Assembly (NCBI RefSeq): GCF_032062105.1
Contig: NW_026924391.1
Location: 62,001 to 126,000, forward strand
From: Saccostrea cucullata
Lineage: Eukaryota
Reading direction: 5' to 3'
Length of the DNA: 64,000 nt
Shown here: positions 17,919 to 29,145 of the stretch, in pieces
Numbering within the stretch: the first letter of the stretch is position 1
Layout of the letters: every line of letters starts with the position of its first letter
Program-made: the position numbers and the translations under genes
The notes under the pieces: generated by a model
The model's database searches: none
Told to the model about the DNA's origin: nothing
The model's input: only the letters and a program-made list of their open reading frames with translations

Positions 17919-19969
17919 TCATTCTGTGTCGTCCGCAAACTCCTCCTTCTTCTGATCTAATTCACCGTCTTGCTGATCATCTGCTTGTTTCAAAAAACAT
18001 GAAATCAATGAATAGCTCTGTGTCAATTTACAAAATAAGCAAAAAATGTTTAATTTTTAATATTAACAATTTATGCTTCAATGCTTTAGTAATGATAGTT
18101 TTAATGAAAGTTTACTTTTGAACAAAAAATATGTTTCAAGACAATACTATTGAAATGATTTGATTTCAAAACTTCCTTTCCAATTACTGCGTATATGGTA
18201 GGTGGAAATCTGATTAGAGGCCTAAAGATGAAAAAAGATGTGAATTGGGCACAAAGACAGACAATAAACTCACCTTCCGGGTCTCCAGCACATACGTCTT
18301 CATACAGGTCCATGTACTCCTCCTTGGTCAGGATATCATCTGTAGGGTAAACATTGTTATGTCGTAAAAATTTTTTTATTCAGTGAAATAATAAATCTTT
18401 AATCTTACGACAGAGTGATACATTAAAGATCAGTGTGATTTAATTTACTTCGAATCCTTCATAAAACTTTTACTATTATCATCTCTCTCTAGTTTAAAGA
18501 TTACAAAAAGTAATAAATTACTACATGTATGACTACCCGGTAGATTTCACATCGAGTCATTCGTCATGTATGTTTACAAGTAATTATAATGCCCCATTTT
18601 CTCTGAGTACATTATTTGCGAGCAGTATCATTAATTTTAGGAAGTTTTATGACTAATTTACACACCACTGTTCTGGTCCAGTTTATCAAATAGGTCTTCT
18701 AACTCCACTAGTCCTGTACTTTGAATCAAGGTTGCAAATTCATCCTTGCTAACATTGTTGTCGAAGTTCAAATCAAGAGTGTTGAATCTACAGATATCTA
18801 TATCAGGTATTTCCTGCACAAAAGATAGAATAAATACATATTTACCTCTTACATATTGAAAAGATAAAAATTAATTTATAGAAAAAATAAATTATCTAAA
18901 AAAAAATGGAGAAGACTTTTATTAGAGACGCAAATGTTTCGAGACTTTGGTTATTATTTTTTCTGAATAACGTTCATATTCATACTGCGTTTAAAACATA
19001 ACTTTATGTAACCTCAGAGTACATTTCCTTTCATTTTAGATTAAAAAAGCACAGCCTTAAAAAGTGGCATCAGGTATGAAAACCTTAAAAAGAAGAACTA
19101 TTTTTAAAAGTTAAGATGTTTAAAATGATAGATGGCTTTTTTCAGACTATCTAAAATTAAGATATTTCTATTTGTTTTGCTACTTTATATTAAGATAGGA
19201 CTTTCCTGTAAATTACACTATTTAAATCAATCGCGTTTCATATAGATATCACAGATTTGAAACAATAACTGATTTATTTCCGACTCAGAAATAAATACCA
19301 GACACAGTTTAAAGTCAATTTAACTAGTAGAAACGTGGGGTTATTTAAGTTCAAAATAGTTGGAATTTTGAATTCGAACGTAAATAACAGATATCATGTT
19401 TATTATCTCGTATTTTTATTTTTTTAGCCCACATACAACAAATATAGCTTTAGAAATTAAGGATTATTAATACGTTTACATAAATAGTATACAAGAATAA
19501 GATTTTTCAAACATACGCTTTCTACAGATCGCTTTCTGTCTCTCCTAAACATGTCCCGTAATCTTCTTGCCATGGAAGCTACTGTAATCACAGTGCCTGC
19601 AACCTTTATTGCTCTACCCAAACCACTGGATCGGGACCTAGACCTTGATCTAGAAGAACGCCTCCGGCCCCACGATTCCGCTTGGTCAATTGTCAGAAGA
19701 CCAATCAGGCAAAGTACAGCGAGGGAACGGAAAATAAGCTAATTATAAAAAATTTAAAAAATTAATTTCATTGTACTATGTATGAATAAAACGTTGGCAA
19801 AACAATTTTGTCAGAAAAATTCTTACAAGAAATATTCACTTAATTACAAAAGATATAATACAATGAAAATATATATATTATAAGAAAATATATTTTGGCG
19901 TTGACTTATATTCTCTACCATATTTAATTGAGGTGGGTTACACTTTAACTTAATTAAAGCACTTACCAT
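17919..19969 (-). CDS. Secreted prepropeptide (family 1, copy B): strongly cationic Arg/Ser-rich amphipathic peptide plus two-EF-hand acidic pro-domain
   Basis: Exons ATG 19969-19967, 19738-19517, 18813-18666, 18339-18274 and 17983-17919. Protein: MLIFRSLAVLCLIGLLTIDQAES|WGRRRSSRSRSRSRSSGLGRAIKVAGTVITVASMARRLRDMFRRD-RKR-SVESEIPDIDICRFNTLDLNFDNNVSKDEFATLIQSTGLVELEDLFDKLDQNSDDILTKEEYMDLYEDVCAGDPEADDQQDGELDQKKEEFADDTE*. Exon phases match both paralogues. Confidence 0.9.
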
Positions 19970-20023
19970 GACTTCAGATGCTGCCTCTCACCTCTAAGAT
20001 AAAAAATGAATGTATGGAGAACT

Positions 20024-20049
20024 TATTTATACTGACGACAACTTCCTTG
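20024..20049 (-). promoter_or_regulatory. TATA box with adjacent ETS-like site (copy B promoter)
   Basis: The - strand reads CAAGGAAGTT-gtcgtcag-TATAAATA, the same arrangement as in copy C. Confidence 0.65.
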
Positions 20050-25947: not shown

Positions 25948-27289
25948 TTAAGTTAACCAATTTGTTTTTGTGGCGATTTGGAATTTTATATAAGAACCTA
26001 TACACATAGTATTCCTCAAAGAAAGTCTAGATTTATTTGCAGTCCCAAGACTTTAGTCAGCAACTAGGGGTAATTAGCTCCTGAAATAAAATATTATCAC
26101 CCTAATTCTCTAGGCACCACCGCAAGTTAAAGTCCTTTTTAACCCACGGTGATAATATATCCCGTGGATAATGTTAGAGATATGTTTTACATGCTGCTCA
26201 CTCAGTCCACAGCGTTATATGGATTTTAATGGATCCTTTCTTTGTCATTTTGAAGGTCCCTTATGTTGATCAAAACATATAGAAAAAACGTTGTGTGACA
26301 CACATTGTTAGAAACAAACAGCAATTATGATTATAATTGAATTTATGTATTAAATGCGTTGTCTATGTATTAAATACATTGTATTTACATGGATGCGATG
26401 GTTTATGTAATAGATATTGCAGGCTGGGATTTTACGCCGGTGGTATGCGAAATTCCAGCCAATGATTAGCGGGCTAGGATCACGTGGACAGCTGAGCGGA
26501 TCACTTGTATTTTTATTCCCGCGCTGTCCACAGTATTTTTGGAATCACGTATATTTTGAAGACCCGCCACCGCCCCTGCAAACCTACCTCTCGCATTTTT
26601 ACAAATTGTATAAGGTGGATTTTTGTAATTATCAATATGGCTCAGTTGGTTTTGATGTGTCACCCCTTTTGTTTTGATGTGCCATCTTTTTGCTATATTT
26701 TTCTTAAAATGTTTGATCTTATTGTTTTATAGGAATTTTTTTCTAGTCATTTTTTGGGGGATCAGACATTTTTCATATTTTACATAATTTCAATCGGAGC
26801 TTGTGAATCTGATCCCCATTCTTTTGTATAAAGTATTTTCTTTGATATCGTCATTTAAATAAATGACATTATTCATCTCTGTGAATGTGTTTGAGTTAAT
26901 CTTTAGCAAACTAAGCAAAAACTAGCTGCGGTGAGCCTGCCGAGCATTTGAAGACATAAATATTTTTTTTTCTAACAAAACAATTGAGAACATCTGGAAT
27001 ATGGAATTATTTTTTTATTTGAAATTTAAATGAATACATTGAATACAAAATGAAATAGAAAAATAACGAGAAAGCAATGATATAATTTTATAAGAGTAGT
27101 TCTTGTATTGAATAATGATTTTTCAGTGTCTCTCAAGGATCACAAAAGCAAAACATGTGTGTCCATGTGCGTTCTGGTTTTTGAAAGATAATACATACCC
27201 AGTACATACTTTGGTTTAAATTATATTAAAGAATTATGTTTTTCTTGAACTTTCACAATCCTTAAGTTCCATTTAGTTCTTGTCACCCT

Positions 27290-29145
27290 TCACATCTGAT
27301 TTACAATCTTGCTTGTTTCTGCTTCAAAAAGTTATAATCAAATTAAGGTAATAATAAAAAAAGCATGAAAATGGCTTGTAATACCTTTTAATATAAAGTA
27401 ATTCTATAATATGACGCAATTCAAAATTCAGCGTAACGGCATGTATCCTAGTTTTACGTAAGATACTTGTATGATATAAAGACACAACAAAATAAACTTA
27501 CCTTTCCCGTTTCCAGTACAAGCGTAGTCATGGAAGACATTATATTCCTCCTGTGTCAGGATTTCATCTGTAAGGGAGAAAATTTGCTAAAATATATCTG
27601 ACAATCAGATTTCAGAATTGGAGATTTTTTTCTTCAAAAGAATTAACCTCGTTTCAAGTTTCGAACATAAATTAAAGCAAATAATAGTATTCATTTGACA
27701 AGATATATAAGAACTATCTATATCATTCTCTGTTTTAAAAAAAGAGAGCTTCTGAAATAGTTAAGTGGTCTTTTTTCTGTCTTTAAAGGGTAAATCTTTA
27801 TATTAAGCTACACTCCAAGTTTCATTTTACATTAAGAAATTCATCTTAACGAGAGTGTTATCTTGATACATACGTAACGTTCGATTTTATTGAAGTGAAT
27901 TTATTCAATGTACAAACCATCATTCTGATCTAGTTTATCAAACAGTTCCTCCAATTGCACCAGCCCTGTGCTTTGTATCAGGATGGCAAAGTCCTCTTTG
28001 GTAACAGTATTGTCGCCATTTAGATCAAAATTGTTAAATTTGCAGATGTGTATGCGAGGAATTGCCTGTACATGTATAAACAGTTTCAACTAAAGAAAAT
28101 CATTTCTTTATCCCTGGCATGCATATTCAAAATATTGAAGGTAAATTGAGGATATTTTATGGAATTCCTCAAATGTTGGTATGGCCTAACAAATAATTTC
28201 TTAAAAACAGTTTGGTTTCACTTTTTTAATTGAATTTTGACCTCAGTTATCCCCCTTCCTGAATTTGACTGATTTCACTGCTTTTGATTGATTTTATTTT
28301 TGATGATTTTATTCTTGATTTCTTATCGTGATATTTTTCGTCTGAATCTTCCCTAAAATTTGAATAGGAAATAGTTACCGTAAAACATTTTTATAAATAT
28401 TAAACCTACGTTTTCTGTTGATCTCTTTCCCATTTTCGCGAAGAATTCCACAAGAACACGTGCGATATTTTCAAAGGTGATTTCTTCTTCAGGAACAGTA
28501 TCTGTATCTAACGTAAGGTCTCTAGCAAACCGCCTCAGTGTCTTAGACTCCGTATGGCCAGTTGTAAGGAGGCCAATCAGGAAAAGAACGCTGTTATAAC
28601 GGAACCTGAGCTAGGTTAAATAAAATAAAAACAAATTAAACACTAGTAGCTTGATTGATTTAGCATGGACAAGATGAGAAGTTTAAAATGAAAGAGTATA
28701 GGACAAAATTTGCAGCACTCTATCGGTACCGAAAAGTGGTGGCGTCTGAGTTATATGAGTGAAATGTTCGCGAGGGACGTCAAACAAAAGACAAGCAAGC
28801 AAACATACACTATAGCCAACAGTTTTACGGCTTAATGGTTGGGAATAAAGAAAATTTCAAAGATAACATTTATTTTGAAAGTGAAAGTCCCATCCCTTTG
28901 GTCCCGATTTTTTTGTTCTGTTTCATAAATGATGTGTGCTGAAATTGGTCGAAATGGATTGAACAGTTCTAAAGAAGCTGAAAATGTTTAATTGTTTATG
29001 CAAGTTAAACGATCATGGACAAAAACAAAAAGCAATGTGTCACCTGAAGGATCCAGGTGACCTAAAAAAATACCAAAATAGTGAAAAATTATTTTTACCA
29101 TAATCAAACTGAGCACAGTAAAGTGGAAAAACAAAAAATTACCAT
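27290..29145 (-). CDS. Secreted prepropeptide (family 1, copy D): anionic, predicted C-amidated amphipathic peptide plus two-EF-hand pro-domain
   Basis: Exons ATG 29145-29143, 28610-28410, 28065-27918, 27567-27502 and 27321-27290. Protein: MLRFRYNSVLFLIGLLTTGHTES|KTLRRFAR|DLTLDTDTVPEEEITFENIARVLVEFFAKM-GKR-STENAIPRIHICKFNNFDLNGDNTVTKEDFAILIQSTGLVQLEELFDKLDQNDDEILTQEEYNVFHDYACTGNGKAETSKIVNQM*. TATAAAAA at 29207-29214 (-). Confidence 0.88.
28697..28805 (+). mobile_element. SINE 3' fragment in intron 1 of copy D
   Basis: Matches the reverse complement of ~14065-14140 (gtggtggcgtct..atatgagtgaaa..tcgcgagggacgtcaaacaa), with a caag/caaa tail. Confidence 0.5.

Follow-up and report, generated by a model that had tools for sequence, protein, structure and literature searches.

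What is encoded by a gene that joins a peptide of changing sequence to a conserved EF-hand tail? The question is raised by three paralogous genes, LOC134266338, LOC134266339 and LOC134266340 (hereafter A, B and C), all labelled uncharacterised in RefSeq, in a 64,000-nucleotide stretch of the genome of the oyster Saccostrea cucullata (the window, whose own numbering is used throughout). In each, the predicted protein runs from a signal peptide, called from its hydrophobic core only, through a Cys-free cargo peptide and a Lys-Arg (KR) site to an acidic domain of two EF-hands between two Cys. The oyster (Ostreidae) gene family behind A, B and C is real and uncharacterised. From their build and from parallels with known precursors, we consider with moderate confidence that they are members of a family of secreted host-defence peptide precursors, and their cargos probably represent a class of oyster antimicrobial peptides, of putative activity, that has escaped notice until now.

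Gene A extends from 19969 to 17919 on the minus strand, B from 22067 to 24535 on the plus strand and C from 29145 to 27290 on the minus strand. A and B lie head to head on opposite strands, so the locus is a cluster and not a same-strand tandem array; the common exon layout of the original prediction, with 148- and 66-nucleotide exons, is found again in all three models. The coding part of exon 1 is the ATG alone, which closes the exon. Exon 2 (222, 216 and 201 nucleotides in A, B and C) holds the signal peptide, cargo and KR site, exons 3 and 4 measure 148 and 66 nucleotides in all three genes, and exon 5 is short and acidic. All introns are GT-AG and the joined models translate without stops; at the level of sequence, this arrangement of gene and protein is established, as is the conserved Lys-Arg site. 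The coding parts are as follows.

19967..19969, minus strand: A exon 1, ATG at its end; TATA-like box about 62 nucleotides upstream
19517..19738, minus strand: A exon 2, 222 nucleotides; signal peptide 19738-19673, cargo 19672-19535, KR 19534-19529; intron 2 joint found in a relative's contig
18666..18813, minus strand: A exon 3, 148 nucleotides; first Cys, EF loop 1, start of EF loop 2
18274..18339, minus strand: A exon 4, 66 nucleotides; remainder of EF loop 2, second Cys
17919..17983, minus strand: A exon 5, coding part to stop, acidic tail; alternative acceptor 17980
22067..22069, plus strand: B exon 1, ATG at its end; TATA-like box about 69 nucleotides upstream
22218..22433, plus strand: B exon 2, 216 nucleotides; signal peptide 22218-22283, cargo 22284-22415, KR 22416-22421; joint 22433-22731 found in two runs
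22731..22878, plus strand: B exon 3, 148 nucleotides, EF domain
23113..23178, plus strand: B exon 4, 66 nucleotides, end of EF domain, second Cys; seen in relatives' contigs
24471..24535, plus strand: B exon 5, coding part to stop, acidic tail; whole model equals the RefSeq protein
29143..29145, minus strand: C exon 1, ATG at its end; TATA-like box about 69 nucleotides upstream
28410..28610, minus strand: C exon 2, 201 nucleotides; signal peptide 28610-28545, cargo 28544-28428, KR 28427-28422
27918..28065, minus strand: C exon 3, 148 nucleotides, EF domain; loop 1 position 12 is Asp, not Glu
27502..27567, minus strand: C exon 4, 66 nucleotides
27290..27321, minus strand: C exon 5, coding part to stop; acceptors 27321 and 27318 give RefSeq isoforms X1 and X2

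The rebuilt model of B is identical to RefSeq XP_062604571.1 and that of C matches XP_062604572/3.1 (isoforms X1 and X2), in agreement with the five-exon structure that had been proposed for all three genes. The RefSeq model of A instead has 126 residues and ends in intron 3, reading through the exon 3 donor in both haplotigs. This donor is weak (GTG|GTGTGT). A five-exon form of A in S. cucullata is nevertheless likely, because GTGTGT donors are used in fully spliced Saccostrea echinata models, the frame of exons 4 and 5 of A is uninterrupted in either haplotig, and in a relative's run an A-like contig crosses from exon 3 into exon 4. Introns 2 and 3 appear at the predicted places in contigs of two runs, which we presume to be of RNA and from relatives. 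A TATA-like box stands 62-69 nucleotides before the ATG of each gene; no NF-kB-like site was found within about 600 nucleotides upstream of A, B or C.

Protein searches identified further members in Magallana gigas, M. angulata, Crassostrea virginica, Ostrea edulis and S. echinata. Outside the oysters, only generic EF-hand proteins matched in searches of limited reach, the ESM Atlas returned generic EF-hand clusters or nothing, and no description of an EF-tailed oyster family was found in a literature whose coverage excluded most subscription journals. Within that reach, the expectation that no already characterised family would surface was upheld. The S. cucullata genome contains 14 EF-exon copies, or about nine genes once apparent haplotigs are allowed for, with cargos of several kinds: Arg-Ser (A and B), acidic (C), Pro/Arg-rich (one paralogue, contig C19098), long and near-neutral (contig C2060), and four helical cationic ones on contig C22997. 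Two paralogues on the last contig (L018 and L019) have no Lys-Arg at the end of the cargo exon; in L019 a candidate mini-exon that begins with K-R-S precedes the EF exon, and none was found in L018. Gene number differs among species and local clusters are present; a second family cluster adjoins carboxylesterase genes in both M. gigas (L053) and S. cucullata (L018). The tree of the EF domain has two well-supported subfamilies, with A, B and C all in the first. M. gigas LOC105321376 has the exon plan of the window genes and shares one neighbour gene with the window, and an O. edulis family gene shares the other, which indicates that the window cluster is a Saccostrea expansion of one locus. At that locus, the counterpart in the other genera bears a helical cargo of the typical W-R-R-R kind. 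In S. echinata the orthologue of C (L054:2269-3493) lacks an annotation, and its cargo exon is interrupted by two in-frame stops.

The K-R-S motif, the two Cys and the EF ligands vary little or not at all across four oyster genera. Most cargos outside the window start with W-R-R or W-G-R, carry a net charge of +10 to +15, are amphipathic and end in Gly-Lys-Arg. Among the 19 complete precursors, none has Cys in the cargo, as the original prediction had noted for the three window genes in contrast to the Cys-rich mytimycins of mussels, and 12 have Gly before KR; cargo length ranges from 33 to 83 residues. When the best 18-residue hydrophobic moment of 21 cargos was compared with shuffled sequences, 11 were significantly amphipathic (p<=0.01), all of them cationic (+6 to +15). 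The window cargos look different. That of A (46 residues, net +13) has an Arg-Ser tract followed by a helix-like half, that of B (44 residues, net +8) also has an Arg-Ser tract, and that of C (39 residues) has a net charge of -2, its last 28 residues carrying -5, and a Gly at its end. A and B end in R-K-R without an amidation Gly, and only C of the three has G-K-R.

In 95% of 231 pairs the cargo was less alike than the EF domain (mean identities 26% and 51%). A sharply diverged cargo beside a conserved EF domain, as originally described, holds in the window for C against A and B (18-22% for the cargo, 58-64% for the EF core); between A and B the two values are 70% and 80%. Between orthologues, the cargo often shows higher identity than the EF core: 98% in the cargo against 66% in the EF core for M. 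gigas and C. virginica, and 85% against 75% for A and its S. echinata counterpart. The ratio of nonsynonymous to synonymous substitution rates (dN/dS) was never above 1 in any comparison or region, so that positive selection was not found, and for A and B against S. echinata it was below 1 in all regions. To call the cargos hypervariable was therefore an overstatement, given this ratio, the likeness of A and B and the one cargo kept at 98%, even though the general excess of cargo over EF divergence stands. In these sequences the pattern is one of divergence after duplication followed by constraint; ongoing hypervariation is unsupported.

Near-invariance such as that of the M. gigas and C. virginica cargo is also often seen in receptor ligands, and the family could be one of signalling-peptide precursors (neuropeptide, hormone or pheromone), in which the amidated helix would be the ligand and the EF lobe a companion for sorting or storage. 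A dibasic site with an amidation Gly is equally typical of neuropeptides, and a snail gene joining putative neuropeptides to an EF-hand region was reportedly described by Bogdanov in 1998 (cited in PMC8398477). We consider this origin unlikely, since peptides of 33-83 residues with charges of +10 to +15 and so little identity between paralogues are unlike receptor ligands, as are the lineage-specific expansion and loss; a survey of oyster ganglion peptides names EF-hands in its reference list only.

Pfam EF-hands were detected in every exon 3 of A, B and C, and in B the two together score 30.8 bits, above the EF-hand_7 cut-off; the EF loops and the two bracketing Cys quoted in the original prediction are present in the models. 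The two loops have 12 residues each, keep ligand positions 1, 3, 5, 9 and 12 and are predicted to adopt a paired helix-loop-helix fold; Gly at loop position 6 is mostly absent, and loop 1 of C ends in Asp. By these predictions the domain has the sequence and fold of EF-hand Ca2+-binding proteins, and Ca2+ binding is predicted. Modelled in isolation it forms an EF pair with a predicted local distance difference test score (pLDDT) of 86; the full-length fold is poor across the cargo, with pLDDT below 50 for residues 19-75.

Such a domain might itself be the working part of a secreted calcium-binding protein of shell, mucus or cement, the basic stretch serving as an anchor or a pro-sequence. Secreted EF-hand mantle proteins are known in pearl oysters, the Ca2+ ligand positions are kept in both loops, close pairs give dN 0.03-0.12 and dS 0.26-1.8 for the EF core, a sign of purifying selection, and the pro-protein taken whole is in most cases acidic. 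A pro-sequence, however, needs no amidation Gly, conserved N-terminal Trp or strict amphipathic pattern, nor would its sequence have to stay 98% identical when that of the EF core falls to 66%. The protein searches, of limited reach, returned no non-oyster or shell-protein-named relative, and no pearl-oyster shell protein of the PFMG1/EFCBP type was among their named matches. A shell or mucus role is on this evidence improbable.

The nearest solved structures of the predicted domain are calmodulin-like lobes, many with bound helical peptides (Z up to 8, a modest score); likeness in fold to calmodulin lobes says nothing of function. Calmodulin lobes bind basic amphipathic helices, and binding of such a helix by the oyster lobe is suggested by analogy. 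The C-terminal parts of A, B and C have net charges of -26, -21 and -10. In 22 proteins from several species, cargo charge correlated with EF-core acidity (Spearman -0.64, p=0.001). After correction for kinship the contrasts gave r of -0.31 to -0.47 with p of 0.03-0.17, depending on branch lengths, and the sign persisted (12 negative, 5 positive).

Several known peptide families offer parallels to this build. Cathelicidins and BRICHOS-associated peptides have a conserved folded pro-domain, of cystatin or BRICHOS fold, N-terminal to a variable peptide; the oyster family likewise carries a variable peptide on a conserved folded pro-domain, with the EF domain on the C-terminal side. Cecropin- and piscidin-type peptides have a Trp start and a basic amphipathic N-terminal helix, lack an EF-hand domain and, in piscidins, carry an acidic C-terminal pro-piece. 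Typical oyster members resemble them in the Trp start, the basic amphipathic N-terminal helix and a Val/Ala/Thr/Gly-rich tail with predicted amidation. There is no sequence match, the likeness being in build only. Among oyster peptides, Cg-Prp, molluscidin and URP20 are also linear, cationic and Cys-free. The texts compared give no EF-hand domain for any of them, and molluscidin has no signal peptide or pro-region. URP20 was considered as a relative and rejected, its 12-mer being unrelated to any cargo of the family.

The closest precedents come from mussels. Mytimycins, antifungal peptides of Mytilida reported from mussels only, consist of a signal peptide, a mature peptide, a dibasic site and an acidic C-terminal EF-hand pair of unknown role (PMC8004829). 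The oyster family has the same four-part layout, and because of this precedent the 'new system' of the original prediction was too strong a term. Compared by eye, Q-T-G-L-x-E between the loops of Modiolus and Perna mytimycins recalls Q-S-T-G-L-x-E in the oyster family. The mature mytimycins, however, have at least 10 Cys, 10 of them invariant (PMC8004829), and the oyster cargos none. The two flanking Cys are also missing from the EF domains of mytimycins, in which the loop starts lie 34-35 residues apart, against 32 in oysters (counted by eye). No mytimycin was among the protein search matches, again within their limited reach, and the EF domains were compared by eye only. Myticalins have a linear cargo with KR, an amidation Gly and an acidic tail (PMC5577615), and they and the modiocalins resemble the oyster family in a Cys-free cationic peptide between a conserved signal and Lys-Arg (PMC5577615, PMC12294457), frequent amidation Gly, an anionic C-terminal extension, clustered genes and some Pro/Arg-rich cargos. 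A Cys-free cationic peptide before Lys-Arg is present in A, B and most relatives and absent from C. Myticalin genes differ in having three exons, the ATG in exon 2 and a phase-1 second intron (PMC5577615), whereas in the oyster family the ATG closes exon 1, intron 2 is phase 0 and there are four or five coding exons; the signal consensus also differs. The myticalin and modiocalin tail is of low complexity (PMC12294457), unlike the EF pair predicted here to be folded. By sequence comparison the family thus belongs to neither group; it combines the mytimycin layout with a myticalin-like linear cargo.

We favour host defence because of the invariant or near-invariant K-R-S, Cys and EF ligands, the W-R-R cationic amphipathic Gly-ended cargos and their lower identity than the EF domain. 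The varying gene number, the clusters, the broken S. echinata C, the charge correlation, the calmodulin-like lobe fold, the mytimycin four-part layout and the myticalin-like linear cargo with KR, amidation Gly and acidic tail point the same way. Other results weigh against host defence. The cargos of A, B and C are the least typical of the family, and their 18-residue moment is not above that of shuffled sequences (p 0.38, 0.51 and 0.07). Their C-terminal 11-mers are borderline amphipathic (p 0.04, 0.08 and 0.01), and as cationic amphipathic helices A and B are borderline cases and C, with its net acidic cargo, is none. No Pfam antimicrobial family scored above threshold, stomoxyn alone appearing with E=0.12. 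The dN/dS values and the 98% identical M. gigas and C. virginica cargo are unlike arms-race peptides, and the charge correlation was not significant with branch-length-weighted contrasts (p 0.11-0.17). The host-defence reading originally offered for the three genes is therefore partly supported, by the amphipathic cationic Gly-Lys-Arg cargos of their relatives rather than by the atypical cargos of the window.

The same atypical cargos would fit a family that is antimicrobial but whose Saccostrea copies have shifted in role or are fading, A and B binding nucleic acid or another polyanion and C being an acidic modulator or in decay. The Arg-Ser tracts without amidation Gly, the acidic C, the stops in exon 2 of S. 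echinata C, the RefSeq truncation of A after exon 3 and the position of C on the longest branch of the EF tree are in line with this. We give it little credence, as comparison with S. echinata shows A and B to be conserved, every region giving a dN/dS below 1, the reading frames are all open in both haplotigs, and A- and B-like spliced contigs occur in the relatives' runs.

By analogy with myticalins and mytimycins we infer, for the host-defence precursors, cleavage, amidation, killing and masking by the acidic lobe. The leader would be removed, a prohormone convertase would cut after KR, a carboxypeptidase would trim the basic end, and amidation would follow where Gly precedes KR. The freed cationic helix would act on microbial membranes; cargos rich in Arg or Pro may have nucleic acids or internal targets as binding partners instead. 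During transport and storage the acidic EF lobe would offset the charge of the cargo, and it may hold the helix in the way that calmodulin lobes hold basic amphipathic ones. One Saccostrea branch of the family would have duplicated and drifted to the Arg-Ser cargos of A and B, the acidic cargo of C and the Pro/Arg cargo on another contig. If the analogy holds, the family works like mytimycins and myticalins without belonging to either. As a more doubtful extension, the lobe might be a built-in, disulfide-locked, calmodulin-like clamp with a Ca2+-dependent hold on its own antimicrobial helix, released when calcium, pH or proteolysis changes. It would also be an exchangeable bivalve carrier whose single cassette exon bears helical, Arg-Ser, Pro/Arg or acidic cargos in the case of oysters and the Cys-rich mytimycins in that of mussels.

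According to a 2025 paper, bivalves have so far yielded no description of amphipathic alpha-helical antimicrobial peptides (PMC12294457); URP20, a 12-residue helical plasma peptide, is nevertheless on record. The oyster family is a candidate to fill this stated gap with gene-encoded peptides, and the oysters that carry it include the main farmed ones, for which disease is a major concern. Its cargos, short and without Cys, are easily synthesised, and the family is cheap to test. Being simple and linear, and including a natural charge-reversed one, the cargos make the role of the EF-hand tail, unknown in mytimycin (PMC8004829), a directly testable question.

The EF genes are probably flanked on both sides by cleaved precursors. 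On one side, an exon at window 33717-34346 (minus strand) encodes about 170 residues of pentapeptide repeats of the form x-P-x-I-x; Gly-Lys-Arg-Ser closes the repeats and a Cys-x-x-Cys domain comes next, further exons lying between about 32700 and 35600. A syntenic 347-residue orthologue without Pfam match lies beside the M. gigas family member. This gene looks like a second, unrelated dibasic-cleaved secreted precursor, on present sequence a putative one. On the other side, a gene at about 11500-15200 (plus strand; exon matches 12849-12956, 13177-13272, 14612-14671 and 14965-15108) has an R-R-K-R site, then a Cys-x-x-Cys domain, and no Pfam match; it is conserved beside the family in O. edulis (at least 314 residues) and S. 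echinata (319 residues). A tandem repeat of about 166 base pairs, presumably the known oyster satellite from its size, occurs at 4300-5400 and 30500-31030. Inverted-repeat elements of 200-800 base pairs at 25550-25951, 9396-10186 and 15622-15820 are probably miniature transposons. Farther away, at 55024-63191 (plus strand), long exons, one of them PTB-like, encode a protein rich in Ser and in Tyr motifs, which by eye resembles a DOK/FRS-type adaptor.

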